A DNA stretch of 64,000 nucleotides from assembly GCF_964204865.1 (NCBI RefSeq), contig NC_135257.1, positions 13,454,001-13,518,000 on the forward strand, given 5' to 3'. Positions 28,054 to 53,000 of this stretch are shown here, piece by piece (positions within the stretch are counted from its first letter, which is position 1; each line of letters opens with the position of its first letter). A program made the translations under genes and the position numbers. Under the pieces are notes generated by a model that saw only the letters and a list, made by a program, of their open reading frames with translations, was not told the origin of the DNA and searched no databases. Source of the DNA: Styela clava. Taxonomy: Eukaryota.

Positions 28054-31000
28054 TTAAATTGTCATAAGCAATTGAATTTCTTCTATAGGGGTCCTAACTC
28101 TCAAACCCTTTTTCGTCATATGAGAAACAACGTCAACAAGCAAATCAGGATTCACAGTTAAAATTGCTAAATGTAGTTCTTTCGACCAAGAACAAGAATT
28201 TATAGCTCTGGTGTACACTGACTGAACCCTATCAGAGCCAAATTCTATTTCAGCTGCCAAATAAGCCTGCCAGAGTACTAGCGAGCCCATGTTGGTTCCA
28301 ACAGAAAGTGCATGTTCAAATAAATTACGAATTCGAGTATCAATATGAGTTTTTGACTCTACAGTTTCAGATGATGACATACAAGCATTCAAAAGTTTAT
28401 TTCTGCGATGTAGTTCAAATTTTATTGCACAAAGCCAAGGTATCACGGAATCTGTCTCATTGCAAATTTTTCTGTAATGTTTTCTAACATTTCCACATAA
28501 ATAGGATGGCATATAGATTTCTCCAAACTTCTCAGCAAAATAAGTGTTAAACGGGAAATCTGTGGCAGCATCTGATACAACTTTTGTATGGATACTTCGC
28601 GATTGTGGTGAAAAAACTTGTAAAATATTTATATTATAGTGATATAAATGTTCGAGATCAATCTTGACTTGTTTGCTGCAACTGATTTGTTTTGTGTGTA
28701 AAAATTCAAAAGCATTTTCAAAGTTAACAAGTATCTGTGATTTGGAATGAATTGAAAAAATATACTGACAAATGGAAAGATTAAAGTAATCACTCGAATT
28801 TGCATCTGAATTTAGATCATTTTTTTTTTCAAATGCAAATTGTTCATATAATGATTGCGATTCTTCTATAAGTCGAGTAAATCCTGCAGATGCTTTTATT
28901 ATACTAACAGAATGCAAATTAGAATCAGTTTTACTAAAATATTCAGCAAATTTATAGTTATCTCCTAAAGCACACAGTGAACGTATAACTGCAAGTTTGA
29001 AATCACAAGTTTTTGAGTCTGTGTGATTTGATGACGGAAAACAAGTCTCACACATGGTTAAATGAAGAATTGCAAATGTTTTACAGATGTAATGAATATC
29101 TGCCAACAACTTTCTCTTTTGAGTCCTATCTGCTGTCTGTAATGATTTTACCGACATTGATAATGTAGTTTGAAAAATTTTACAAGCCTCATTTCTTTTA
29201 CCACATATCCATTCAATTATTGCAAGACTGCACCATATATGTAACAGATTGGGTTTGTCACTTAAAATCTGTTTGGCAGCCTTTCTCGCTTCTTTACCAG
29301 TTTTACGAAGTTGGGATGTTTTGCCTTCAATAAAAACACATATAACTCGGTGTTCGTGATATGTCATGTATTCACCGCAAAGCATAGTCTTTAGCTCATC
29401 ATCACAGGTGGAGGTAATGAGCTGGCAAAATACTTCACACAGAAAAGTATGTTTCGATGCAACAATGGAACCAAATGATCGGAAAAGTAATGGCTTCATT
29501 CCATATAAACGTTCATCTTGTTTTAAAACCTGATCTGGATGACTAAATGAAAATATATTCTGAGATGACAAGGGTTTGGATGTGGTTGAACTATAATGTT
29601 GAGCAGATCCCATGATACGAACAAAGTTTTTCAAAATCACAATTTTTAACACTTTGCTATCAACGACAAACAATAAATCTTTTATACTAGAAAATGACAC
29701 AATCCTCTCAGAATCATGACATTCATCACCTTCAAAAGATGGCTGCCATCGTAACCATTGTTTATCACAACGAGATTTTTCAATATTCAACCAATTTTGG
29801 GTTAGATTTAAAGAGGGATCGACGTCATCTTCAATATCATCTTCTGTCATGCTTGTATTGTCAGAAGTTGAGACCCATCCACCAGTTTGATTTTTCATAA
29901 TCCAAGCATTGAAACCTTTTGAATCTTTCTCACCAACTTTTGGTTCGCTACTCACAAAATATTGTCTGATAGCGTCAATGTGTTCTGCCCATGTATCTAT
30001 GTCATCTTGACTTCGAAAATTTAGCTCAATCATACACTGATAAAGGCTTGTCAATTGTTCCATGTGTCCAGTGGCAGATAAAAAGTCTGTGTATTCTAGA
30101 AACACCTCAACCAATCTATCTTCAGCAGATATCTCAGAAGATGTATCTTGTTTATATAATCCATTTTTAATTGATCTTAAAATCTCCACGCAATGAGAAA
30201 ATGCTCTTCTTGTTCGGTTAAGACTGAAAGTTGAAACACTGTTACAATTAATGTAGAATATATAGCCTCTCCATACTTCTATATTATCTGGAAATCGAAA
30301 TAATAAATTTTCCCATTCATTATCAAGTGTAGCATGATCAGATGCTATTTCCGACTTCAAACGTAATTTCATCAAGTGTAATTTTGCATCTCTGGGATTG
30401 GCTTTGATAGCTTGATTCAAAATTTCAATTTTTTTTTCAGAGATAATACGGGATCTTCCGTGTACCAAACTGCCTTTTAAAACTTCATCCTGCCAAGATA
30501 GTAGTTCCATCCATCCATCTATATCTTGCGGGTTTTCTCTCACCCTTCGATTGAGTTTTTCTGTTATAGATCTCTGTAGTGTTTCATTAGAATCTATCTC
30601 ATCATTTTCATTTGTTTGGTCTTCTGAATTACCAGTTATTGCAATATAATTGTCAGTGAGAAACTGTAGTTTTCTTCCTTGCTTATGAATTCCAGAAAAA
30701 GTATCAGCAACTGGCAATTTTGTACCAAAATAGCGATGATTTGTTTCATCATTTGCGCGCTTTCTTCTTCTCTTTTTCTTAGATTCTTTGATTTTTATAT
30801 ACTGCCATATTGGAGTCCCAACACAGCATGCAAGGTCTCGATAATACTTCGATGTATAAACTTTATAAAGTCTGCCAAAATGTACATTATCCATATCTGG
30901 AATTTTATCCGCTTGAAATATTGGCATGTCAGAATGTAACTGATCAACTATGACTGATAATTTTTCATTTTTAACACTGTCAGCAGTCTTCAATTGTTTT

Positions 31001-31251
31001 TTATATTTTGGGGAGAGTGACCTATGCTTCTCTTTCTTTTTCCTCTTCTTACTTTTTGATATTCTCACGTTAGTTTCAACCACATCACTAGAATCATCAC
31101 TTGGTGTATCAGATTCATGTTTTCTGTCTTCTAACTCGGTTAGTACAGATGCTGTTTCAGGAAGAAAACTTTCATTTTTCAACCAATCTTTGTGTCCCCT
31201 GTCTTCCTTTTTCTTAAAAGTAGTTGTGGCCGCCGCAGGAAACAGACTCAT
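28054..31251 (-). CDS. NRDE2: Nuclear exosome regulator NRDE2 (intronless, ~1065 aa)
   Basis: Likely start is MSLFPA (ATG at 31251). LNRRVRENPQDIDGWMELLSWQD, EKKIEILNQAIKANP, ECHDSERIVSF, C-terminal KGLRVRTPIEEI. Confidence 0.9.
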   Translation of the reverse strand: MSLFPAAATTTFKKKEDRGHKDWLKNESFLPETASVLTELEDRKHESDTPSDDSSDVVETNVRISKSKKRKKKEKHRSLSPKYKKQLKTADSVKNEKLSVIVDQLHSDMPIFQADKIPDMDNVHFGRLYKVYTSKYYRDLACCVGTPIWQYIKIKESKKKRRRKRANDETNHRYFGTKLPVADTFSGIHKQGRKLQFLTDNYIAITGNSEDQTNENDEIDSNETLQRSITEKLNRRVRENPQDIDGWMELLSWQDEVLKGSLVHGRSRIISEKKIEILNQAIKANPRDAKLHLMKLRLKSEIASDHATLDNEWENLLFRFPDNIEVWRGYIFYINCNSVSTFSLNRTRRAFSHCVEILRSIKNGLYKQDTSSEISAEDRLVEVFLEYTDFLSATGHMEQLTSLYQCMIELNFRSQDDIDTWAEHIDAIRQYFVSSEPKVGEKDSKGFNAWIMKNQTGGWVSTSDNTSMTEDDIEDDVDPSLNLTQNWLNIEKSRCDKQWLRWQPSFEGDECHDSERIVSFSSIKDLLFVVDSKVLKIVILKNFVRIMGSAQHYSSTTSKPLSSQNIFSFSHPDQVLKQDERLYGMKPLLFRSFGSIVASKHTFLCEVFCQLITSTCDDELKTMLCGEYMTYHEHRVICVFIEGKTSQLRKTGKEARKAAKQILSDKPNLLHIWCSLAIIEWICGKRNEACKIFQTTLSMSVKSLQTADRTQKRKLLADIHYICKTFAILHLTMCETCFPSSNHTDSKTCDFKLAVIRSLCALGDNYKFAEYFSKTDSNLHSVSIIKASAGFTRLIEESQSLYEQFAFEKKNDLNSDANSSDYFNLSICQYIFSIHSKSQILVNFENAFEFLHTKQISCSKQVKIDLEHLYHYNINILQVFSPQSRSIHTKVVSDAATDFPFNTYFAEKFGEIYMPSYLCGNVRKHYRKICNETDSVIPWLCAIKFELHRRNKLLNACMSSSETVESKTHIDTRIRNLFEHALSVGTNMGSLVLWQAYLAAEIEFGSDRVQSVYTRAINSCSWSKELHLAILTVNPDLLVDVVSHMTKKGLRVRTPIEEIQLLMTI

Positions 31252-32103
31252 GACAGAATGAACATACAACACTAACAACAACTGGCATAATATATGTACC
31301 TAAGAAAAACAGAAATAAATCATTTTATTAGATGAAAAAATGATAAAGCCTTCAAACATTGAATATTTTCATTAAGTCTGAGAGATGTATTAATTATCAA
31401 AACATACATTCAGCCATAAGATGAGCCCTCCTAACCTGCCAATGATATCATTTTCAATAGGGTTTGGTATTCCTTGATAAGAAATAAGTAAATTATTGAC
31501 ACATCTGACAGACAAATGTCAGAAATCTAAATGACCCCCAATATTTACGGGTAGGTTAATGCCATGCAGTTTTTTTTGTACTATACCAAGTTAATGGGTT
31601 TTTGCCTCCACATTAATACACATAATTTATCATAGTAGTGATGTATGATGATCTAATCAGATTGCAATAACAGTACGTTAATTGAATTGCTGGGAAAACC
31701 ACGCTTGATAACATAACCATTGACAATATTCATTCCATTATATATTGAAACTTTCAAAATATAAGTCAGATTTTATCTTGTTCAAACAAATATTAATTTG
31801 ATCACAGAAAATAGTCTTATATATATCATAATTTTGTTATTTATGTAGAATAGATTAGGAAGTATTATATAACAAGATAACGACTACTTTGTGGATTTTC
31901 ACAAAAATATCCTCAGACACAAAACTTCCATCAGTTCAGATACTGTCCCTAGAACAGTAAGGAAGAATTTGTGACTTTAATCTCATTCCGTTTGTCCATA
32001 TTTTATCGTAGAAGTGGATAATATCCATTGACAGCACCATGCCCATATTCGACTGTGAACGGAATTCTGAGACAATATCCAGACCAAGGCATCGCATCCC
32101 ATT

Positions 32104-40808: not shown

Positions 40809-42201
40809 ATGGTTAAGGCAGTACCGTACCTAAGGTAATAAACAAGGATGCTAGGGGAATTTCAAATGTTATGTAGCTAAGCAATAGACTATTGTTAAAC
40901 AAAAATATTGTATTTCATATGATTTTAATAACAGACACTAAAAGAGGCCAAAGAAAAGCCAAACGTGTTCGAAAAAAGCCAAAAATGGCAAATTTGGCAT
41001 TAAAAAAGCCAATATGGCAACCCTGCCCTATAGTCCAGTAGTCACTTTGATAACAACAAGATGACATTACGCAGAGTGACTATAACACTTTATTGTCATT
41101 ACGGTATTATAGTCACTTTGCTTTTTTGCAAAGCCCATATTACCTGCTTTTACGCATATATATGGGTATGGGCTTTGCTTTTTCTTCGTCACCTACATCA
41201 TCTAGTGGTAGTTTACTACTTTGGACTTTTCACGGAGAGCGCTAGCGTTGTCGCCGCGCTTTTCATACTGTATCTGGCAGTAGTCTAATATAGTTCACAT
41301 GATATCTACAAAGCAAAATACCTAAAAAACGTGACCTTTCTAACCTGTAAGAAATCTAATATGAAGTCATTTCTCTGTGTGGTTTTAATGATTTATGACA
41401 TTATTATAATTATTTTTTAACATATTAACATATTCTTTTCAAATTTGGAAACCTTGGAGAGGAGATGAATAAAAAACTCCTATGCATCGATATATATATA
41501 TATATTTTTTTTTTTCTAACGGATCAGAGTTTTTCCAGTCTCGGATCAGTGTCTTGAAGACACGTCATATCCGAGTCATATCGGTATTACGCTTCATAAG
41601 CATGCCACTGCGTAAGCAGCGGTCATACACATAAGGCGGCTTCCGTATCCGCTATGTATTGCAAGGCAAAGACTTCGGCCCCGAGCATCAGTACATGCTA
41701 TGTGCCAAATAGCAGGACGTCTGCCCAGGGCTTCCGTCAATGCCATGCTTAGTACAGCTCAACTTCCGCCACCCCCGGCTTTTTTTATTTTTTTATAATT
41801 TACGGATCAGAGTTTTTCCAGTCTCGGATCGGTGTCTGAAAGACACGTCATATCCGAGTCATACCGGTATTTCGCCTCATAAGCATGCCACTGCGTAAGC
41901 AGCAGTCATACACTTAAGGAGGCTTCCGTATCGCTACGCATTACAAAGCAAAGATTTTAACCCCGAGCTTTGGTACATGCTATGTGCCAAATAGCATGAC
42001 GTCTGCTCGGGGTTTCCGTCAATACCATGCGTAGCATAGCTCAACTTCCGCCGCCCCGGCTTCTGTACATACTGTGTAACGACCTTTAAACACGCACCCA
42101 GCATGACATCCACCGCGAAGCTTTTGGTTCATCATTTCCGTATGGGCTGGGGATGGTATTTCATTTTATTATGCTCCCATTTATGGGAGTTGAAGAAAGC
42201 G

Positions 42202-45200
42202 CTATTGAAGATGTTGTTTCCAGTTTTCCTGGAGTTTGAGTTTATCTGTAGCGTCAAATTTAGCTAAAAGCGTGTCTATCTTCATTATAAATTCTTTGGA
42301 AATCAGTTTCCGTGTGTCGCAGATATCATCTGGAACTGCGTACCTGTTGGCGCGGTCGAGTCGGGACTTTAGTCGAATTGTAACGTCTTTTAAAACGGAG
42401 TAGAATTTAAGGACTATAACTTGATTTATTTGGTTGTAAGAGTTGTTCATGATACTTTCCCTGGTGATGGAGATTGTGTCACCAGTTATGCGGGCGAGTT
42501 TATTTTCAACGAAGCTGTGTAGTTCGTAATATATTGGACACGATAGAAAGATATGATGGGTATTATCCCTACCCCGCGCACACAATTTGCAATTGTGTTT
42601 TTGATTTTTGTTTGACCCCGAGCTTCCTAGTAGACCGTATCGCCATTTACGGTGTCCGTATAAGAAAGCGTCCTGGTTTATTCTGTACGACGTGATGCGT
42701 TCGTTATTTGAGAAGAAATGTTTTATATCGGCGTCAAGGAGATTTATTTGGGTCCAGTTTTTTGTATCATGATGTGATCTTTCATAAGTCTTTTCTTTTA
42801 AACTTCTGTAGATGGTTTTCAGATTCATTGTTTCCCATTCTTTTGGTTGGGGGTCCAAGACATAGCTTATGTTCATGATGTGACTCCAATGTGCGTCTAA
42901 TTTTGATGAGTGAGGAGTCGAGTTGGTATAGAGGCAATTTTTGATCAATTTTATTTTTGTGCCGAGGGTAAAAAGGGCTTCATGGTGCCAAAATTCTGAC
43001 GGATGGTCCATATTATATAAGTTGCTTATCTGTTCTAACAAGCACGCATGGGATCTTAGTTTGACATCGACCATGTCAATTCCACCTTTCCCGACTGGTT
43101 GTAAGAGCGTTTTTCGCGACAGGGGCTCTATTCGTTCTGGGTGCCATAGGTACCTGAAACATTGAGCCTGAATGATATTAAGGATCCGGATTGGTGCGGG
43201 CCGTACTTTGGCTCCCATCGTGATATGAGGAAGCACCAAAGTTTGTATGACAGTTTTCTTCCCTAGCCATGACAGTTCACGTGTTTTCGCTGATTGCAAG
43301 ACATTATTTATTTTGCTAACTTTCTTTTCCCAGAACATCTTTGATGCGCCTTTTCCGTAATTCAGTCCGAGTATTTTTATGTTTTCCCTATGGTATTTTT
43401 GGTGCTCAGTGGTTTCCAAATTTCGTCTGGCGGTACTGTTTAGGCATAGGATTTCGGTTTTATCGATGTTTATTTTCTGGCCCGTGGCGCGTCTAAATAA
43501 GTCTAGTTCGTGGAATATGATGTTTATGGAGTGGGGGGATCTGATCGTAAAACTGGTGACGTCAGCATATTGCTCCATTATTTGGATTTTCTTTCCCAGA
43601 ATAATACCCTTTATGTCCGTGTTGGACAAGATTGCCCTGGCCAGGGGCTCAACATTGAGGGTGTAGAGCAACATGCTCATCGGGCATCCTTGTCTGATCC
43701 CTCTTTTTATTTGGATTTTTGGGGTGAAGGCCCCGTTTACTTCTATTGTGCTGGATATGTTAGAGTAAATTTCTTTTATTATGTCTAGGTTTTTTTTACC
43801 AATACCTATGTTCTCTAACAGCGAAAGTATGAAACTGTGGTCGACGAGGTCAAAGGCCTTCATCTGGTCAATCGTGAGGATGTATCCTGGGATTGATTTC
43901 ATATGGGCATATCGAATGATACTATCTATGTTTCTGTGAGTATCTGTCATTTTACGGCCAGGGATCGTGCATTTTTGGGATGGGTTTATAATTTTACCAA
44001 ATTTCAATTTTAGTCGGTTTGCCAAGAGTTTCGTTAAAATCTTATAATCAACGTTTAGATTGGATATGGGTCTCCAGTTTTTTAGGCATGTTGGGTCCGC
44101 TTTTTTGTAAATGAGTATAACTCTGGCAATTTTCCAGCTATCTGGCATGGTTGCGAATAATATGGAGTTGTTTATGATCTGCGTGAATTTGTTTTTAATT
44201 TGGGGCCAAAATGTTATATAAAACTCTTTTTCGAGTCCGTCCAGACCAGGTGATTTGTTATTGTCCATACTCTTGATGGTGGTTAGTATTTCGGCCTCGG
44301 AGGCGGCCATTTCTAGATCCGTAATGTCGCTTTGGGATAGAGTGGGCTCCGACATTAAGTGTTTGTAGTGAGTTTGGATTCTTTTGTCTGTGGTTGAAGT
44401 ATCGCCCCATAGGTTTTTGTAGAAAGAAAGAATACTCGCCATGATTTGAGGTTGGTCACTGGATGTCGCTGTTTGGCCCGTTTTTATCTCTGTCAAGGAA
44501 GAATTCTTCTCTCTCTGGGCAATTTTATCGTAGAAGAATTTAGTTGGTTTCTCGTCTTCCTCAGCTTCCTTTTGATTCGCTACATACTTTGCGAAAGCTT
44601 TTCTTTCGTGAATGATATTGGATAAATGTAGTTTTTTGCTGTCGAGGTCTGAATTTTTTAGTACGTCTGTTCGCTGTTGGTGTTTAAGAATTTCTTTTTC
44701 TATGCTTTTTTGTTCTAACATTTGTTTATGCTTCTGGCCAATGCCAAAAGCTATTGCTTCTTTTTTGATCTGATTTTTAACGTGGTCCCACCAAATATGA
44801 AGGTGATCGTACATTTCCAATTCAGCCAGGAGGTAGTTATATTTATTTTTGATTAATTCACGGAAGACTGGGTTGTTATAATGCTTGGTGTTGTTTCTCC
44901 AGCTGCCCTTACCCCAATTCGGCTTAAGAGTGGCGCCGAGTTCAATTGAGGGGAAGAGAGTGTGATCAGAGACTATGTTCGTATGATACTCGCATGATTT
45001 CATGAAATTTTTAAGCTCCTCTGAGATGTATATCCTATCTATTCGCCTGGCTTGAAGTTTGCGGTGAATGGTATATAAGGTCTTGTTTGGGTTCTTTTCG
45101 CGGTAGGGGTCACTTAGATTCGTGCTCTGAATGAGTGTTTTAAGAAATTTTTCGCCTTTTTTTAGTCCGGATTTTGTTTTATGTAAGGCGTCTATATGGT

Positions 45201-45684
45201 CTGTGATGGCATTAAAGTCTCCTGCTAATATGAGGTTGGCGTGGTGGGGAAAATCTTGAAATAATATAGTTGTCAGCGATTCGAAGAAACTTGTTTGTGC
45301 AAGACTACCTTTATGTGGGGGTCCATACACATTTACAATTTTTAAGGTGTCGTTCTGAAATTTTAGTTCTAGTAGTGAGACTCTATACCTTATTAGGGCT
45401 TTGAATTGGATAACTGCTCCTACTAGGACGTTAGACACTAGAAAAGCAGTTCCTGCAGAGAAGAAGCGTTCGTCGGTTCTTGTGTGGTCAATGGAGTCTA
45501 GAAAAATTTTGTAGCCCAGTTTGGAGGACCATGCGTAAATTCCTGTTTTGTGGAATTTGTGTACTTCCTGAAGAAGGACAATAGCAGGTTTGTATTTTTT
45601 TATTGTAAATTCCAATTTTTGGAGGTGGGGCATGATACCGTCTACGTTTAAAGAAATTATCCTCATTTTGGTTTGACAAGTCAT
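42202..45684 (-). CDS. Tx1 ORF2: APE endonuclease + reverse transcriptase + C-terminal CCHC; RT motif reads YADV
   Basis: SLNV, LQEVH, NVYGP, AGDFN, RIDRIY, SDH; KSPGLDG, NWRPIS, KAFD, GIRQGCPMS, QYADVT; CKLC...HIFLSC. Confidence 0.95.
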   Translation of the reverse strand: MTCQTKMRIISLNVDGIMPHLQKLEFTIKKYKPAIVLLQEVHKFHKTGIYAWSSKLGYKIFLDSIDHTRTDERFFSAGTAFLVSNVLVGAVIQFKALIRYRVSLLELKFQNDTLKIVNVYGPPHKGSLAQTSFFESLTTILFQDFPHHANLILAGDFNAITDHIDALHKTKSGLKKGEKFLKTLIQSTNLSDPYREKNPNKTLYTIHRKLQARRIDRIYISEELKNFMKSCEYHTNIVSDHTLFPSIELGATLKPNWGKGSWRNNTKHYNNPVFRELIKNKYNYLLAELEMYDHLHIWWDHVKNQIKKEAIAFGIGQKHKQMLEQKSIEKEILKHQQRTDVLKNSDLDSKKLHLSNIIHERKAFAKYVANQKEAEEDEKPTKFFYDKIAQREKNSSLTEIKTGQTATSSDQPQIMASILSFYKNLWGDTSTTDKRIQTHYKHLMSEPTLSQSDITDLEMAASEAEILTTIKSMDNNKSPGLDGLEKEFYITFWPQIKNKFTQIINNSILFATMPDSWKIARVILIYKKADPTCLKNWRPISNLNVDYKILTKLLANRLKLKFGKIINPSQKCTIPGRKMTDTHRNIDSIIRYAHMKSIPGYILTIDQMKAFDLVDHSFILSLLENIGIGKKNLDIIKEIYSNISSTIEVNGAFTPKIQIKRGIRQGCPMSMLLYTLNVEPLARAILSNTDIKGIILGKKIQIMEQYADVTSFTIRSPHSINIIFHELDLFRRATGQKINIDKTEILCLNSTARRNLETTEHQKYHRENIKILGLNYGKGASKMFWEKKVSKINNVLQSAKTRELSWLGKKTVIQTLVLPHITMGAKVRPAPIRILNIIQAQCFRYLWHPERIEPLSRKTLLQPVGKGGIDMVDVKLRSHACLLEQISNLYNMDHPSEFWHHEALFTLGTKIKLIKNCLYTNSTPHSSKLDAHWSHIMNISYVLDPQPKEWETMNLKTIYRSLKEKTYERSHHDTKNWTQINLLDADIKHFFSNNERITSYRINQDAFLYGHRKWRYGLLGSSGSNKNQKHNCKLCARGRDNTHHIFLSCPIYYELHSFVENKLARITGDTISITRESIMNNSYNQINQVIVLKFYSVLKDVTIRLKSRLDRANRYAVPDDICDTRKLISKEFIMKIDTLLAKFDATDKLKLQENWKQHLQ

Positions 45685-45706
45685 CGAGGTGTGTAAGGTT
45701 TTTTTT

Positions 45707-47023
45707 TTAGTCTGATTTGAGAATTACTTCCCTTTTTTTGGCTGACGGTTGTTGTGTCAGAGAGGTAGAAGACGAGGCAGAGACAGAAGAATTTGTCTGG
45801 CTCCTGTCCCTCTTATTTTCATGGGTCGTTAGGTGGCGCGGCTGAGTTTTTTCGAGGTCCGTGGTGTTGTCTGACTGCTCCGTGCCCAAGCAGGCTGGAG
45901 CGGACGAGATCTGAGGTGTTTCCGGGAAGACCGGGTCGTACGAGGCCGCCTGGTGGTCATACTCAGGAAACCTTTTCGAGTAGTGACCTCCCACCTTAGG
46001 GGGTTGGAATGGCGTATTGCCTATAGTGGAGGTCATCTTTAGTTTCGGTCTACGTGGTGCAATCGGAGGTAGCGGGTTCAGGTGGAATGATTCCTCGCTG
46101 ATGTCGGGGCTGAGAGACCAATCTTTGGTCTCGTTGCTTTCAACGTCAATCTCCCCCGACTCACTGCTGCCCTGTGATGTGGTTTTTTCTTCTTCATCTC
46201 CTGTGTCTTTTTTGACTGGCGAAGTTTCCTTCGCCGATGTTCTATGAGAAGTTTCTTTCCCTGTTAGTTGGTGGATTTTGTTTTTCGCTGGTAGTTTATT
46301 CACTACAGTGTCTTTAAACCATGACCTAAGAGACTGTTGGGTGCCAATTACCTTATCTGGGCAGTTTGAGCTTATGTGTCCCTCCTTAGAGCAAGTTCGG
46401 CACCGTTTGGTATTTTTACAGCCGCGCGCCGTATGTCCCGTTTCGAGGCAGTTTATACATTTTGGCACGTAAAGTTCCGTCGGCAGAAATGTTTTGTAGC
46501 GCGCCCCGTCTATGTCAAGGAAAGGTGGAAATTTGACATGGTCGAAGTCGGTGAACCATGCCGCTACGTAGCCATTGAATAACGTCGTACCTCGGTGGTA
46601 GAGTTTGTTTACATTTTTTAGTTTACCACACTTAGCTTTAATTAGTACGCCAATCACTGATTGTCGAGTGACTTCATCAGGTAGACCCTTAATGCTAACA
46701 CGCGTCGGCGGTTTTGTCGGCGGCAGGAACTGAATGTTTACATTCCCTGTTCTTATCACGTTTGGGTTATCTCTTAAGAAATCATCTCTCTTAGACTTAT
46801 TTTTATCGTCCTTTCCTATCTGCCGAAAAGACAGAATCCAGATCCTCGGTCTCAACTCATACATTGCAGTGAGATCTTCAATGTATTTCCTAGTAGTTGG
46901 CGAACTTGTTAGGATGTCTAGAAAGGTAGGCATATCTAGATCACCACTTACCTCGGCAACCACTGAACGTGGACGCTTTCCTTGAACTTCAGCCTGGCCC
47001 GAGACTGCAGCGGAGTAATCCAT
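45707..47023 (-). CDS. Tx1 ORF1 nucleic-acid-binding protein with two CCHC zinc knuckles
   Basis: MDYSAAVS start, CINCLETGHTARGC and CRTCSKEGHISSNC, disordered C-terminus. Ends 22 nt upstream of ORF2. Confidence 0.92.
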   Translation of the reverse strand: MDYSAAVSGQAEVQGKRPRSVVAEVSGDLDMPTFLDILTSSPTTRKYIEDLTAMYELRPRIWILSFRQIGKDDKNKSKRDDFLRDNPNVIRTGNVNIQFLPPTKPPTRVSIKGLPDEVTRQSVIGVLIKAKCGKLKNVNKLYHRGTTLFNGYVAAWFTDFDHVKFPPFLDIDGARYKTFLPTELYVPKCINCLETGHTARGCKNTKRCRTCSKEGHISSNCPDKVIGTQQSLRSWFKDTVVNKLPAKNKIHQLTGKETSHRTSAKETSPVKKDTGDEEEKTTSQGSSESGEIDVESNETKDWSLSPDISEESFHLNPLPPIAPRRPKLKMTSTIGNTPFQPPKVGGHYSKRFPEYDHQAASYDPVFPETPQISSAPACLGTEQSDNTTDLEKTQPRHLTTHENKRDRSQTNSSVSASSSTSLTQQPSAKKREVILKSD

Positions 47024-47124
47024 ATTATAATCCAGAATGTGTAATCCTTTGTTGTTATTCCTTAATCAGACAGCGACTCAATATTGTACTTAATACAACA
47101 AAATACTCCACTGCCTAAACTTAA

Positions 47125-47179
47125 TCAGCCTTTACCTCTTCCAGACATGTCTTTCGTTTTTTGTGCGTACGTTTTTTGT
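47125..47179 (-). other. Histone H4/H2A mRNA-like 5' head on element A (31-nt leader + uORF MSGRGKG*)
   Basis: Minus strand: acaaaaaacgtacgcacaaaaaacgaaagac ATG TCT GGA AGA GGT AAA GGC TGA. Confidence 0.8.
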
Positions 47180-47427
47180 CCCCCGGCTTCCGTACATACT
47201 GTGAGGCGTGTAACACGTACACCGTGTTATGACATCCACCGAGAAGCTCCCGATTCATCATTCCGCAGAAAGTTATGGATGGTATCATCTGAATTAATCT
47301 CCCATTTATGGGAGGTGGAGGTATGGCGTCATTTATAAAATAGTCAAAGTGGATTCATCAATTTGTTCAATCATTTAGAATATGTTTCCAGTTTTTTCTG
47401 ATACCAAATATTTCCAGGTTTTCGAAT

Positions 47428-50023
47428 TTAGTCTCGAGTAGGGTGAGAAATTCTGTCAATTTTTTTTAGAGTTTGATCTAGAATATTCTTATCAGTATAC
47501 CTGTTTGAATACCTGTCTTCTCTGTCCAGTTGGATTTTTCTTTTTATTATATTAATCTTCATGATAGTGAAACCTTTAATGACCAGAAGTTTTTGTGGGC
47601 CGTCGTAGCTATTGTCCATGATTTCCTGTCTTGATATTGTAATATTTGTGTTACATAATCCGTTGATTGCTTCCGTGGTTTCTGCGATGTATATTGCTGT
47701 TTGGCGGCAGTGGAGGAAAAGATGCTTGGAACTATCTAGTGGCAATTTGCAGAACTTACAATTCATGATCTTAAGTTCGCCAGATGGTTTGAATCGAATG
47801 CCCATTCCTCTCATCTTATCTCCGAATATGTATCCTTCCTTATATATTCGGTAGGATACTATTCTTTCGCTGTTGGTGAAGCTGGATCGGAAGAACCTTT
47901 CGCGGAGATGGACTTTATTCCAATTTGGATCGTTTTGTTGTTCGATGTGGTTTATCTTTAATTTGTGGTATAGGTCTCTGTGGCGCGCGGTCTTCCACTC
48001 GTCTCGAGAAAGGCCAACTTCTTTGAAGATGTCCAAGATATTGGTCCAATGTTTTGGGGTGATTAAGCTATGGGGCCTAGAATTACTATAGAGGTTTTTG
48101 TTGATAACTTTAATTTTGTATCCTAATGAAAATAAAGCCTCCATTTGCCAGAATTGATTTTTGGTGCGGTCATGTACAATTTGTTTCATTTTTTCCACTT
48201 TGCAAGCTTTAATTTTTGCGGTTAGGTCAATCATGTTGATCCCCCCTTATTCCACGCTTTTTGTAAAGTTGATCTCCGTTTGGCTTCAATTCGTTCCGGG
48301 TACCATAGGAATTTATAGCAAGCGCTCTGAATCCTTTTGACGGTTTTCTGTGGGACGTTCTTTACTCGGGCATGGAATATAATTACAGACATTAATATTG
48401 AATTTATAATAATCTGTTTAGCATACCAAGTTAATTAACGTAGCTTGATATAATTTAGAGTTCGAATTAATTTGTTAGCAATATCATTCCACATTTTTTC
48501 TAGCCCTATTTCTCCGAATTGTATGCCAAGGATTGTGGTGTGTTTCTTTATGTATGTCCGATATGGTGAGTTGAAAATTAATTGGTGCGAGGCAGTGTTC
48601 CCTCTAAGGTGTGCGCGTGTGCGCGCGCACACAGCTTTCAGAGGCTGCGCACACGCATAGATTTACTGCGCACAGACGTATTTCGATGTAATGTAACAAT
48701 TTTCTCGGTTGGCAGGTTGAGAAAGTTTGTTGTTGGCCCACCCATTACCCGGTTAGAATGCCAAAATCTCTTCATTGGTTTTTGCACAAATATTAGCCAT
48801 TTCCAAAAAAGTGCGCACACATCAAAATTTCTGCGCACACATACTACAAGAAATTAGAGGGAACATTGGTGCGAGGTTTTTGTAAGGTACAGTATTTCTG
48901 TCTTCTCGATGTTTGTTTTTTGGCCAGTTGCTATTTCGAAATGGTTTGATTCTTTGAATATTTCGCTAACTGATTCATAGTCGCGAACTGCAAAGGTTAC
49001 ATCGTCGGCGTATTGGTCCAACTTATGTTCGAAATTTCCTAATTTTATCCCATGTATATCTCTATTGATCAATATAGATCTGGCGAAGGGCTCAGTATTT
49101 AAGGCGTACAAAAGCATGCTCATCGGGCATCCTTGCTTAATTCCCCTTCGAATTGTTATTTCATTCGATAGCTTCCCGTTCACATCCACTTTGCTGCTGA
49201 TTCCTGTATAGATATTTTTTAATAAAGTAAAAGCCCTATTTCCAATTCCAATTTGTTGCAAAATTTTAAACAGAAAACCATGGTTGACCCTGTCGAAAGC
49301 TTTTAGGTTATCGATTAAAATTATCGTCCCGGGGATATTTTTCATTTTACAGTGTCTTATGATTGCGTCCGTATTGTAGTGCACGTCTTCGATGCTCCTT
49401 AGGGGGAGTGAACATTTTTGAGTTTTGCCTATGATCTTATCCAGAATTGGCTCAAGGCGCATAACCAAAATTCTCGAAATAATTTTATAGTCTGTATTTA
49501 AGGTGGTTATTGGTCTCCAATTTTTGAGTAATTTTTCGTCGCCTTTCTTGTATATAAGTTTAACTTTCGCAGTTTTAGCAGAGTTTGGTAGATGGCCGAA
49601 ATAGAAAATATTGTTAATCAATTGAATAAAATGAGTTTTAATTAAATTCCAAAACGTGATATAAAACTCTTTACTAAGGCCATCGAGCCCTGGCGATTTA
49701 TTGTTTGGCATGTACTTGATGGCATTATATACTTCTTCTTCCGTAATAGGCCTTTCCAAAGTGGTGTTTTCGTCCTCTGCTATTGTTGTCTGGCTCATTA
49801 GCGATATATAGTAGTTTTGGCTTGATTGTTGCGTCTCGCTCTCCTTCCCCCATAGGTCCGTGTAGAAGTTCTCCACAGTTGTTACAATTTCTTCTTGACC
49901 AGATACCACCAATTGATTGTCGGTCATTAGTTGGTCAATTGTCGTCTTTTTTGCTCTTTTCCTAATTCTCTCGTAGATGGTCGATGTCGGCTTTTCGCCT
50001 TCTTCTAGATCTTTCATCTTCGC
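47428..50023 (-). pseudogene. Disrupted ORF2 (RT and C-terminal zinc finger) of Tx1 element B
   Basis: KSPGLDG, NWRPIT, GIKQGCPMS, QYADDVT, CKFC...HLFLHC. Broken by a MITE, a stop at 48435 and a frameshift near 48250. Endonuclease lost by truncation. Confidence 0.9.
48593..48868. mobile_element. hAT MITE inserted in element B ORF2
   Basis: TIRs cagtgttccctctaa / ttagagggaacattg. Perfect 8-bp TSD GTGCGAGG at 48585-92 and 48869-76. gcgcacac subterminal repeats. Confidence 0.92.
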
Positions 50024-50056
50024 CATCGATATAGCATAGCCTAGGTATGTAAATAC

Positions 50057-53000
50057 CAGTGGCGGCGCGTCAATAAGGCCAATCGCGGCAATGCCCCGGT
50101 TGTTTTTTCGGGATAATAAAAAATATTCGAAAAATACCGCAATATCGGTTGCACAGACTGTCTACACTAGCCATATTCTCCCGACATGGTTCATTTTTCG
50201 CTCGCAAAGCCTTCGCCGAACGTCGACGGGGCGACGCCGATTTTGCCCCGGTTGCTCATTGTATATCGTATTCTCTCTTTTATCTTCCACTCGCCGCGTT
50301 TGTCTCGTTTGTTTTCTGTTTCTTTTACTAAATCATCGCGGCCGATCGGGGCTAGCCCCGAAATTATGACGACACAATGCCGACGTTTCTTACAACAACG
50401 TGTTGACATATTCACGCATTCCTTCTCGTTCGTTGGTTGCTTGAAGAGTTGATAGTTTCCTCGCCTTCGTTTTTGTCGCTTGTTTCCCTATTTGAATCAG
50501 TTAGAGACCTTTAGTCCATTTGCTTTCGATTTTCCACTTTCCTTTTGAGCTCCTCACTTCTTTCCGGCTTCGCATTTCTTAGCCTTAGACCTCATAATGA
50601 ATAAGGTTGATGCACTACTTCGCACTCCGTTTTCGCAGCTGCCGCTGGAACATAAATTAGAGGTACAACGTCTTGGGCCTTATCAACCAAAAAATTGTTC
50701 ACTGGAACAATCCCATGACGGAGGAAAGCGTCGGCGTACATTCTGCGCAGAAACTTGGTATAAAAAACACGAATGGTTGTGTTACAGCGAGGACAAAAAT
50801 GCACTTTTTTGTTTTCATTGCCTACTTTTTGCTACCGCCCGTGACTCACGTTGGTGTAAATTTGGTTTTAGAGATCTTAAACATCTTTCCGAGCGTGCCA
50901 ACTGCCAGGGATCATCAATCTTCTATGGAGCATCTGGACAATGCAGTAAAATACCGAACATTCGGGAATGTTAATATTGCAACACAGTTGGATGAAGGAC
51001 GCGCGGTTTCTATTCGTCGGCACAACCAAAACGTCCAGAAAAACCGCCATGTTCTCGGTCGATTGATAGATGTTTTGAAGTTCATTGGTTGTCACGAGCT
51101 GTCCCTCCGTGGGCACGATGAACGGGCTGGCTCTTCTAATAGAGGGGGATTTTTGGATATGGTGGAATACACCGCATCCCTAGATACAGTATTGAGAGAT
51201 CATCTTGATGCCGCAACTGTTTCGAAAGGGACATCTAAGGATATCCAAAATGATTTGCTCGACTCAATGTATAAAATTTATTTACAACATTTGGCTCTGG
51301 AAATTGAGAATTGCCAGTTCCTTTCGATTCAGTCTGACGAGACAACTGACATCACGTGCGTTTCCCAACTGGCTGTGATTTTTCGGTTTGGGAAAGATGG
51401 TAAACCTACCGAGAGATTTCACAGCTTTGTACCAATCGTTGATCGCACGGCTTGCGGGATATCGGCTGTACTGAAAGAAGTGTTACAGCCTTACAACGCG
51501 AAGTCAAAATTGATAGCTCAAACTTATGACGGCGCGGCAGTCATGAGTGGGTCGAAACATGGTGTTCAAGTTTATATAAAAGAAAATTTTCCTCATGCGC
51601 ATTTTTTATATTGTTATGCACCCCAATTTAACCTCGTTATTAAAAATATGTGTCTTGATACCCCTCTCGTCCGTATATTTTTTGCAAATGTTTCGGGGTT
51701 TTCTTCATTTTTTTCCGTTTCGCCGAAGCGCTCTGACCTCCTTCGCCAGATATGTAGCCGCCGTCTCCCAGCTTGTGCACCAACACGTTGGAACTTCCAA
51801 TCACGCGTGGTGCAGGGCGTGTCCGAAATTAGGTCTGAGCTCATTGAGTGTTTCAATGGCATTCAGAGCTCTCCGGTTTGGGACGAACGCTCTGTGAGGG
51901 AGGCAGGTCTAAAGCGTCTGCTAGAAGATGGTGAGTTTTCATTTTTTCTCGCTTTTTTTCTCCACAATATTCTATCACGTGGATGTATTATACGGCGCAT
52001 TGCAGTCAAGGCTAATGGATGAAGCGTCTGTGCAGTCGTGTATTTCAGACTTCTGCGATGCTGTATCTCGTATCCGGGAAACAAAATACGACGACACATG
52101 GAGTGCTTCTTTACGCCGCGGGCAAACAACGCAGCGTTTGATTTTGTCTGCAAAGGAATGCTGTGACATTCTGGTGAATCAAATAGGCGATCGTCTGCGC
52201 ACTGAACACCTTGCCGCGTTCTCTTTGATGAACCCCAACAATTTTTCAAAATTTGCACGTCAATTTCCCATCCATTTGTTGGCTACTGTCTCCAAATTTT
52301 ACCCCATGATAAACGTGGGTAAATTGGAAAATGAATTGCGATGTATATACACCAATCAAACTTTTTTGAACATCACATCAACTTGCGCGCTCTATGGGTT
52401 CCTCATAGATAACACTCTAGTAACTACCTTTGCGGCGTCTGCAAAATTTCTTGACATCATTTTGACGACGCCTATTTCTTCAGCCGACGCAGAGCGAACA
52501 TTCAGCACGCTGAAGCGTATTAAAACGTATCTCAGAAACACAATGAAGCAAGATAGATTAAATTCCTTGGCTGTTTTATCCATTCACAGAGACGTTATTT
52601 CTGGGATGCATGACTTTAATCAGCGCGTTATTGAGCATTTTGCTTGCAAGAAACCGCGGCGTGTTGCATATATGTTCAAGCAGTAGAAGTCTAGCAGCAT
52701 ATATATCTATGAGTGAGCGACGCATGTCCTTATCTTTGCATTAACTTTCCTTTCTTCATAGTAACGTTTTAAACCTTATTTTAGGTTTTGTCTGCTTTCC
52801 CGAAGTTTCTGTTAATATGTCATTGTATTTATCTGGGTAAATATTGCCTTTCCTTTTGAAAGAGGTTTCAAAATAAACTATGTCTATATTTATTAATCCC
52901 TTGACTTGGACCGGTTTTAAAGACACTTTCTTATCGTTAAAAATTGTCGCTTTTGCCGATTGGTTGTTACCGATGGAATGGTTTTTATACTCATCAAATG

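Follow-up and report, generated by a model that had tools for sequence, protein, structure and literature searches.

Site-specific LINEs have been described for the genes of rRNA, snRNA, tRNA and the spliced leader, for transposons and microsatellites, and for telomeres. The target-specific LINEs of the Tx1 clade include Keno, Mutsu, Dewa, Kibi, Koshi and Tx1L (Kojima and Fujiwara 2004, via PMC4640811 and PMC4494074), and in these accounts the targets are RNA genes, transposons or microsatellites. In Kojima 2015 (PMC4494074) the specificities of the clade are set out, along with the idea that a transcribed target makes a promoter of the element's own dispensable; the known-target list in PMC4640811 contains no histone gene and no other protein-coding gene. 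R1 and R2 of the rDNA depend on co-transcription with their target gene and occupy a minority of the tandem units, and target-derived RNA ends may aid precise integration, as stated in PMC4494074. R2 has a restriction-like endonuclease, a single ORF, Pol I transcripts and a self-cleaving ribozyme. Upstream host sequence at the 5′ end of a copy is described in PMC4494074 for L1 5′ transduction and for the SVA subfamily with the MAST2 promoter. Searches of the full-text literature yielded neither a histone-targeting LINE nor a published case of a LINE that is site-specific for a protein-coding gene family.

We analysed a 64,000-nt stretch of DNA (the window) that carries on its minus strand, at 41772-47197, a complete LINE (element A) together with its duplications and a mimic of its target site. 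Element A is a Tx1-like LINE that is site-specific and whose target belongs to a new class. Its home site is very probably one exact position in replication-dependent H2A genes, and this reading as a whole is the best explanation of the data. Element A resembles Keno and the other Tx1-clade LINEs, as these are characterised in the accounts cited, in its APE-type endonuclease, two ORFs, single orientation, exact site, multicopy target and several families per target. Unlike them, it uses a protein-coding Pol II gene and inserts within the coding sequence, at codon 3-7. It shares with R1 and R2 the occupation of a minority of tandem units, and would, as they are, be co-transcribed with the target gene. 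Unlike R2, it is APE-type with two ORFs and would be expressed from a Pol II mRNA-type transcript, and its own first codon ends a 7-codon uORF derived from the host. The host promoter of an L1 or SVA copy is an accident of one source locus, whereas that of element A comes with its target, and every on-target copy would regain a host promoter.

The features of element A and of the LINE that surrounds it (element B) are listed in Table 1. ORF2 of element A was aligned with human L1 ORF2p over residues 6-883 (E = 2.6e-64). With APE and RT domains alignable to L1 ORF2p and a separate ORF1, element A is a member of the L1 superfamily (L1/Tx1 group). Its placement as Tx1-like is provisional. The top matches in a protein homology search were unnamed and at most 32% identical; a plant protein with the automatic name "Transposon tx1" was also among the matches. 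No clade emerged from a search of the protein atlas. The 3′ end of the element reads ...GATCCGT and is followed by the A-rich tail. Further long ORFs of 449 aa, 252 aa and 1075 aa, located in the window at 50673-52686 (+) and 28054-31281 (-), gave no match to the proteins of element A at E ≤ 1e-5.

Table 1. Coordinates of element A, its insertion site and element B in the window.
Feature	Position	Strand	Remarks
Element A proper	41782-47127	-	Intact, young copy
TSD, 5′ copy, AAGCCGGGGG	47189-47180	-	10-mer recurring at 41781-41772; inside element B 3′UTR
8 extra nt, ACAAAAAA, at 5′ junction	47179-47172	-	Neither H2A nor target sequence
Transduced H2A 5′UTR, final 23 nt	47171-47149	-	100% match to C8 histone array units
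Transduced H2A codons 1-7, ATG TCT GGA AGA GGT AAA GGC (MSGRGKG)	47148-47128	-	
Element A own 5′UTR, 104 nt	47127-47024	-	First base as in H2A-resident copies
ORF1, 438 aa	45707-47023	-	Intact; CCHC zinc knuckle
ORF2, 1160 aa	42202-45684	-	Intact; APE-type endonuclease (PF03372) and RT (PF00078)
3′UTR of element A, 400 nt	41802-42201	-	Conserved in many families of the genome
Box C-like ATGATGA	42135-42129	-	Element A 3′UTR
Box D-like CTGA	41810-41807	-	Element A 3′UTR
Terminal stem, ACGGA / TCCGT	42141-42137 / 41806-41802	-	Element A 3′UTR
A-rich tail of element A	41801-41782	-	Short, impure; boundary to duplication ambiguous by 1-2 A
TSD, 3′ copy	41781-41772	-	Directly after A-rich tail
Element B, upstream part	47190..50041	-	5′-truncated, frame-broken ORF2 and start of 3′UTR
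Element B 3′UTR, first part	47427-47190	-	3′UTR homology
Element B, downstream part	41771-41505	-	Rest of 3′UTR and own A11 tail

A preliminary description of this DNA had noted a histone head directly after the duplication, encoding MSGRGKG and followed by an in-frame TGA, and had left H4 and H2A as its possible sources. The head is arranged as described, and a search of the element's own genome identified the gene as H2A. Over their 44 nt, positions 47171-47128 showed 100% identity to the 3′-terminal 23 nt of the H2A 5′UTR and codons 1-7, and this head matched more than 80 H2A genes of the tandem histone repeat on contig C8. The histone unit has a period of about 5755 bp (5.75 kb) and the order H4 (-), H3 (+), H2B (-), H2A (+) and H1 (+). 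Upstream of the H2A gene lie a TATAAATA box and a CATTC motif, and past its stop codon there is a histone 3′ stem-loop; the matching gene is a replication-dependent H2A. The 23 nt of 5′UTR in the head lie between the TATA/CATTC elements and the H2A ATG. An origin of the head from H4 was rejected: the H4 start is nearly identical but has GGACGAGG in place of GGAAGAGG of H2A, and the gene that matches the 44 nt is H2A.

The A-rich leader of 31 nt had been proposed to match a real histone 5′UTR. It consists of 23 nt that do so at 100% identity and, on the outer side, the 8 extra nt, in whose place the H2A gene reads ...CATTCAATAC upstream of CGTACG. The last 13 nt of the transduced codons 1-7 are the duplication formed at H2A genes. 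As had been read from the sequence, the first three bases of the element's own 5′UTR, TGA (47127-47125), are in frame and close the H2A reading frame, and the next ATG after the histone one is that of ORF1. The 5′UTR has stops in all three frames and zero ATG; between the duplication and ORF1, ATG occurs only at 47148 and 47023, and the gap from the TGA to the ORF1 ATG is 101 nt.

A source copy inside a histone gene after codon 7, flanked by a 13-bp duplication, had been predicted, and two such copies were found. These full-length copies, which we assign to family A1 with the window copy, lie at C8:7646939 and C8:7717779, are 97.8% and 98.3% identical to the window copy, respectively, and have ORF1 and ORF2 intact. 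In both, an unchanged H2A promoter, 5′UTR and codons 1-7 are followed by the element, which starts with TGATTAAG. On the 3′ side, 41-47 A are followed by AAGAGGTAAAGGC (with a single base changed in one of the copies) and the remaining H2A coding sequence. The duplication at H2A is thus 13 bp, with the first-strand nick placed between ATGTCTGG and AAGAGG. In their flanks, occupied units share 99.3% identity or more with empty ones. The two A1 array copies can be told apart by the lengths of their tails, by a single duplication base and by the 3′UTR. In the copy at C8:7646939 the final ~330 nt of the 3′UTR are A2-like and contain 41 of the 72 differences from the other A1 copy, which suggests recombination or template switching between families.

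A second family (A2), with 71% nucleotide identity to A1 and 64% aa identity in ORF2, has the same H2A junction. Its copies at C8:7626415 and C8:7663836 are 37.4 kb apart and end in identical short tails; a single insertion, duplicated along with its array segment, probably accounts for both. A third family (A3), at C8:7869540, lies in the same H2A gene start with its junction after GGT (ATGTCTGGAAGAGGT). All A1, A2 and A3 insertions in H2A genes are in the sense orientation. At least three families use the H2A gene start, and relatives use other histone sites. One of these, at C8:8040308, lies after codon 8 of a diverged H4 gene that has AAG, whereas the H4 genes of the array have ACG. Four further H4 heads (including those at C8:7940042, C8:7986180 and C14:2922209) are not followed by normal H4 sequence.

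By pattern counts, 81 H2A sites were empty and 5 on C8 were occupied (5 of about 71 on that contig), and the 67 H4 genes in the C8 array all lacked an insertion within the first 35 nt of the coding sequence; the contrast in occupancy between H2A and H4 is not significant on its own and is only suggestive. In the host, about 6% of the array H2A genes are disrupted. Only a handful of element A-type copies exist, and the locus counts are lower bounds: among at least 8 loci with the 5′UTR of element A, 6 are in C8 histone genes and 2 (the window copy and a relic on C3) are dispersed. These two also carry the only H2A heads outside the histone arrays. The C3 relic is a diverged piece of ~130 nt that comprises the head and 5′UTR, with no ORFs and no 3′ end, and therefore gives no second off-target site. 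Separate insertions were thus found at one nucleotide of a repeated target in a single orientation, with few copies outside the target (2 of at least 8 5′UTR-bearing loci). These results indicate that element A is a well-supported H2A-specific LINE, which is inserted after codon 7 and flanked by AAGAGGTAAAGGC.

Base for base, head and element meet in the window copy just as they do in the genome at the H2A-resident copies. The window copy was therefore templated by a transcript begun in an H2A gene upstream of the element, as the 5′ head of H2A 5′UTR and seven codons likewise shows. The off-target copy is direct sequence-level evidence on the RNA that was copied. The window head starts at CGTACG, 41 nt after the start of the TATA box and 9-10 nt after the CATTC motif, and the head of the C3 relic starts at the same base. 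This common start would fit, though not prove, an RNA 5′ end that is set by the H2A promoter. CATTC is the expected cap site and the head starts 9-10 nt downstream of it, which leaves the true start site uncertain.

The main competing explanation accepts the specificity for H2A and places an internal promoter in the 104-nt 5′UTR, so that the window head would stem from sporadic read-in transcription and would not reflect how the element is normally expressed. Internal promoters are common in L1-type elements. The 5′UTR, which could hold one, is 88% identical between A1 and A2 against 71% for the rest of the element, and the distance of the head start from the expected cap motif also agrees with this explanation. 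However, both dispersed copies that retain the 5′ end have an H2A head with the same start base, and the own-genome search found no headless full-length copy of element A. Moreover, the start of the element closes the H2A frame in every family, which has a consequence only where the transcript includes the H2A ATG. Across the five junction types, the conserved TGATTAAG-like beginning of the element always ends the histone frame no more than 7 codons from the junction, though chance may account for this arrangement. We consider an internal promoter unlikely. The preferred reading is that the RNA would start at the H2A promoter, the element having no need of a promoter of its own, and that its expression would track histone expression.

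Element A was inserted into the 3′UTR of element B and not into ordinary host DNA. ORF2 of element B aligns to residues 363-1116 of element A ORF2 with 30-48% aa identity, and the ORF at 47428-48234 is its C-terminus (33% identity). The 10-bp duplication, the A-rich tail and the 8 extra 5′ nt are the signature of an ordinary target-primed insertion. The mimic site ATGTACGGAAG (47197-47187) matches the H2A start ATGTCTGGAAG (47148-47138) at 9 of 11 positions, in agreement with the preliminary description; for a random site in the fixed register P = 1.3e-4, with the comparison chosen post hoc. The off-target site ATGTACGG^AAG and the H2A site ATGTCTGG^AAG are in register, and the primed strand of both reads CTT^CC..ACAT. 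The window copy is an off-target insertion at a mimic of the H2A start, and the 5′ transduction that had been proposed for it is present as the H2A head.

Two units of ~275 bp downstream of ORF2 (GCCGGGG...GGCGGAAGTTGAGC) were considered as a SINE or a small-RNA gene and as the real target of the element, and these readings were rejected. Such a unit follows ORF2 in every family and is therefore part of the LINE 3′UTR; the second unit is the displaced remainder of the element B 3′UTR. Rfam gave nothing at gathering level for these units (chance-level matches only, E > 2), and ARAGORN found no tRNA in them.

Families that share the 3′UTR type of element A but are only 31-47% identical to it in ORF2 have exact insertion sites of their own. 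At four loci in C8 7.33-7.84 Mb (L040, L041, L042 and L050; ORF2 31-34% identical), poly(A) is followed by TTGAACAAAAAAAAAATGGCC, which is histone H3 5′UTR, at the same base each time. At L044, L048 and L049 (C8 7.80-7.82 Mb) and at L065:2002-2060 (ORF2 47% identical), poly(A) is followed by CGAAAGACATGTCTGG, and the insertion is in the H2A 5′UTR, 8 nt before the ATG. At L065, this copy is immediately followed by an A3-type element within a single H2A gene. On C6 at 19.5-20.05 Mb (L045, L046 and L058), poly(A) is followed by TTGTGGACCGAGTCG...TATTTAAGAC at three places, which is a recurrent target. At L057 (C9:13121367 region), a LINE whose head is U2 snRNA nt 3 to about 37 lies inside the 3′UTR of another LINE, and at L057 and L047 poly(A) is followed by TAGCGGATGTGATGAATCGG, so that these two loci are insertions at one site within a LINE 3′UTR. 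U2 snRNA at about nt 37 is the Keno site, as given in PMC6136364. Here a relative with the element A-type module adjoins an element whose U2 head ends at the Keno site, a further likeness to Keno.

The module runs from ACGGA-A-ATGATGA to CTGA-TCCGT, which follows ~325 nt later and just ahead of the poly(A). The boxes and the stem were all present in 22 of the 24 3′UTRs examined, which come from families no more than 31-47% identical in ORF2, and the other 2 each had one stem mismatch. The ends of the 3′UTR resemble a box C and a box D closed by a terminal stem of 5 bp, for which covariation gives no support, the stem columns being invariant across the 3′UTRs. A wider reading can be drawn from these observations. 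Element A would represent the first LINE lineage for a protein-coding gene family, driven by a histone promoter (S phase/early embryo) and using a 7-codon uORF, within a radiation that shares one C/D-like 3′UTR module. The targets (histone, U2 and possibly spliced-leader genes) would gather at Cajal/histone-locus bodies, an RNP on the 3′UTR would guide the element there, and the endonuclease would pick the site. We offer this combination tentatively and regard it as doubtful.

The sites of the sister families in the H3 and H2A 5′UTRs also bear on the origin of the copies in the array. A single chance insertion into H2A, spread by unequal crossing-over and without true site specificity, would fit the two A2 copies, whose identical short tails and distance of 37.4 kb agree with segmental duplication. 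However, A1 and A2 differ by 29% and yet have a common junction, the A1 copies differ in tail length, one duplication base and the 3′UTR, and a third family lies at the same gene start with another junction. Furthermore, the off-target site mimics the H2A site, and the sister families have exact sites of their own. This explanation is highly improbable. A one-off chimera of the U6-L1 kind, in which RT switched from LINE RNA to H2A mRNA, could be suspected from the occurrence of only one high-identity dispersed copy with a head, but it is ruled out, with next to no probability left, by the genomic junction that the head shares with the H2A-resident copies and by the duplications and downstream H2A sequence of these copies. 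The preliminary description had itself raised a one-off chimera and headless copies at unrelated sites as the contrary outcome; the full-length array copies lie in H2A genes and have a shared junction.

The site-specific reading is thus retained, and the steps of the life cycle may be outlined from the junctions. The endonuclease would recognise roughly ATGTNNGG^AAG. The cDNA end complementary to the co-transcribed head could pair with the new H2A gene, so that 5′ joining would proceed by homology. Such pairing would keep the junction of each family constant (13, 7 or about 11 bp), unlike the 10-bp duplication of the off-target copy. A uORF of 7 codons with a spacing of about 100 nt favours reinitiation in eukaryotic translation. 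In the case of element A, ribosomes would initiate at the H2A ATG, terminate at the TGA and take up translation again 101 nt on, at ORF1.

Relative to the two A1 array copies, 72 differences are private to the window copy. The private changes in the ORFs comprise 36 synonymous and 25 non-synonymous ones (P = 4e-7 against the neutral expectation of 28% synonymous). This excess of synonymous changes indicates that most of them arose in a functioning lineage, and the element A lineage evolved under selection for its proteins. The direct source of the window copy is an element that is sister to the array pair and absent from the assembly.

The use of the H2A coding start as a target widens the safe-harbour strategy of insertion into multicopy genes to include protein-coding genes transcribed by Pol II, and suggests that a LINE can forgo its own promoter by taking one that ranks with the cell's strongest under cell-cycle regulation. 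Element A also provides a natural endonuclease with a defined target of 11-13 bp, which is useful for biochemistry.

The histone array itself is irregular at C8 7.29-7.86 Mb. It flips orientation several times, e.g. near 7.42, 7.45, 7.53 and 7.61 Mb, and many of the unit spacings there are 11-13 kb instead of 5.75 kb, which suggests that many units carry an insertion of ~5.5-7 kb.
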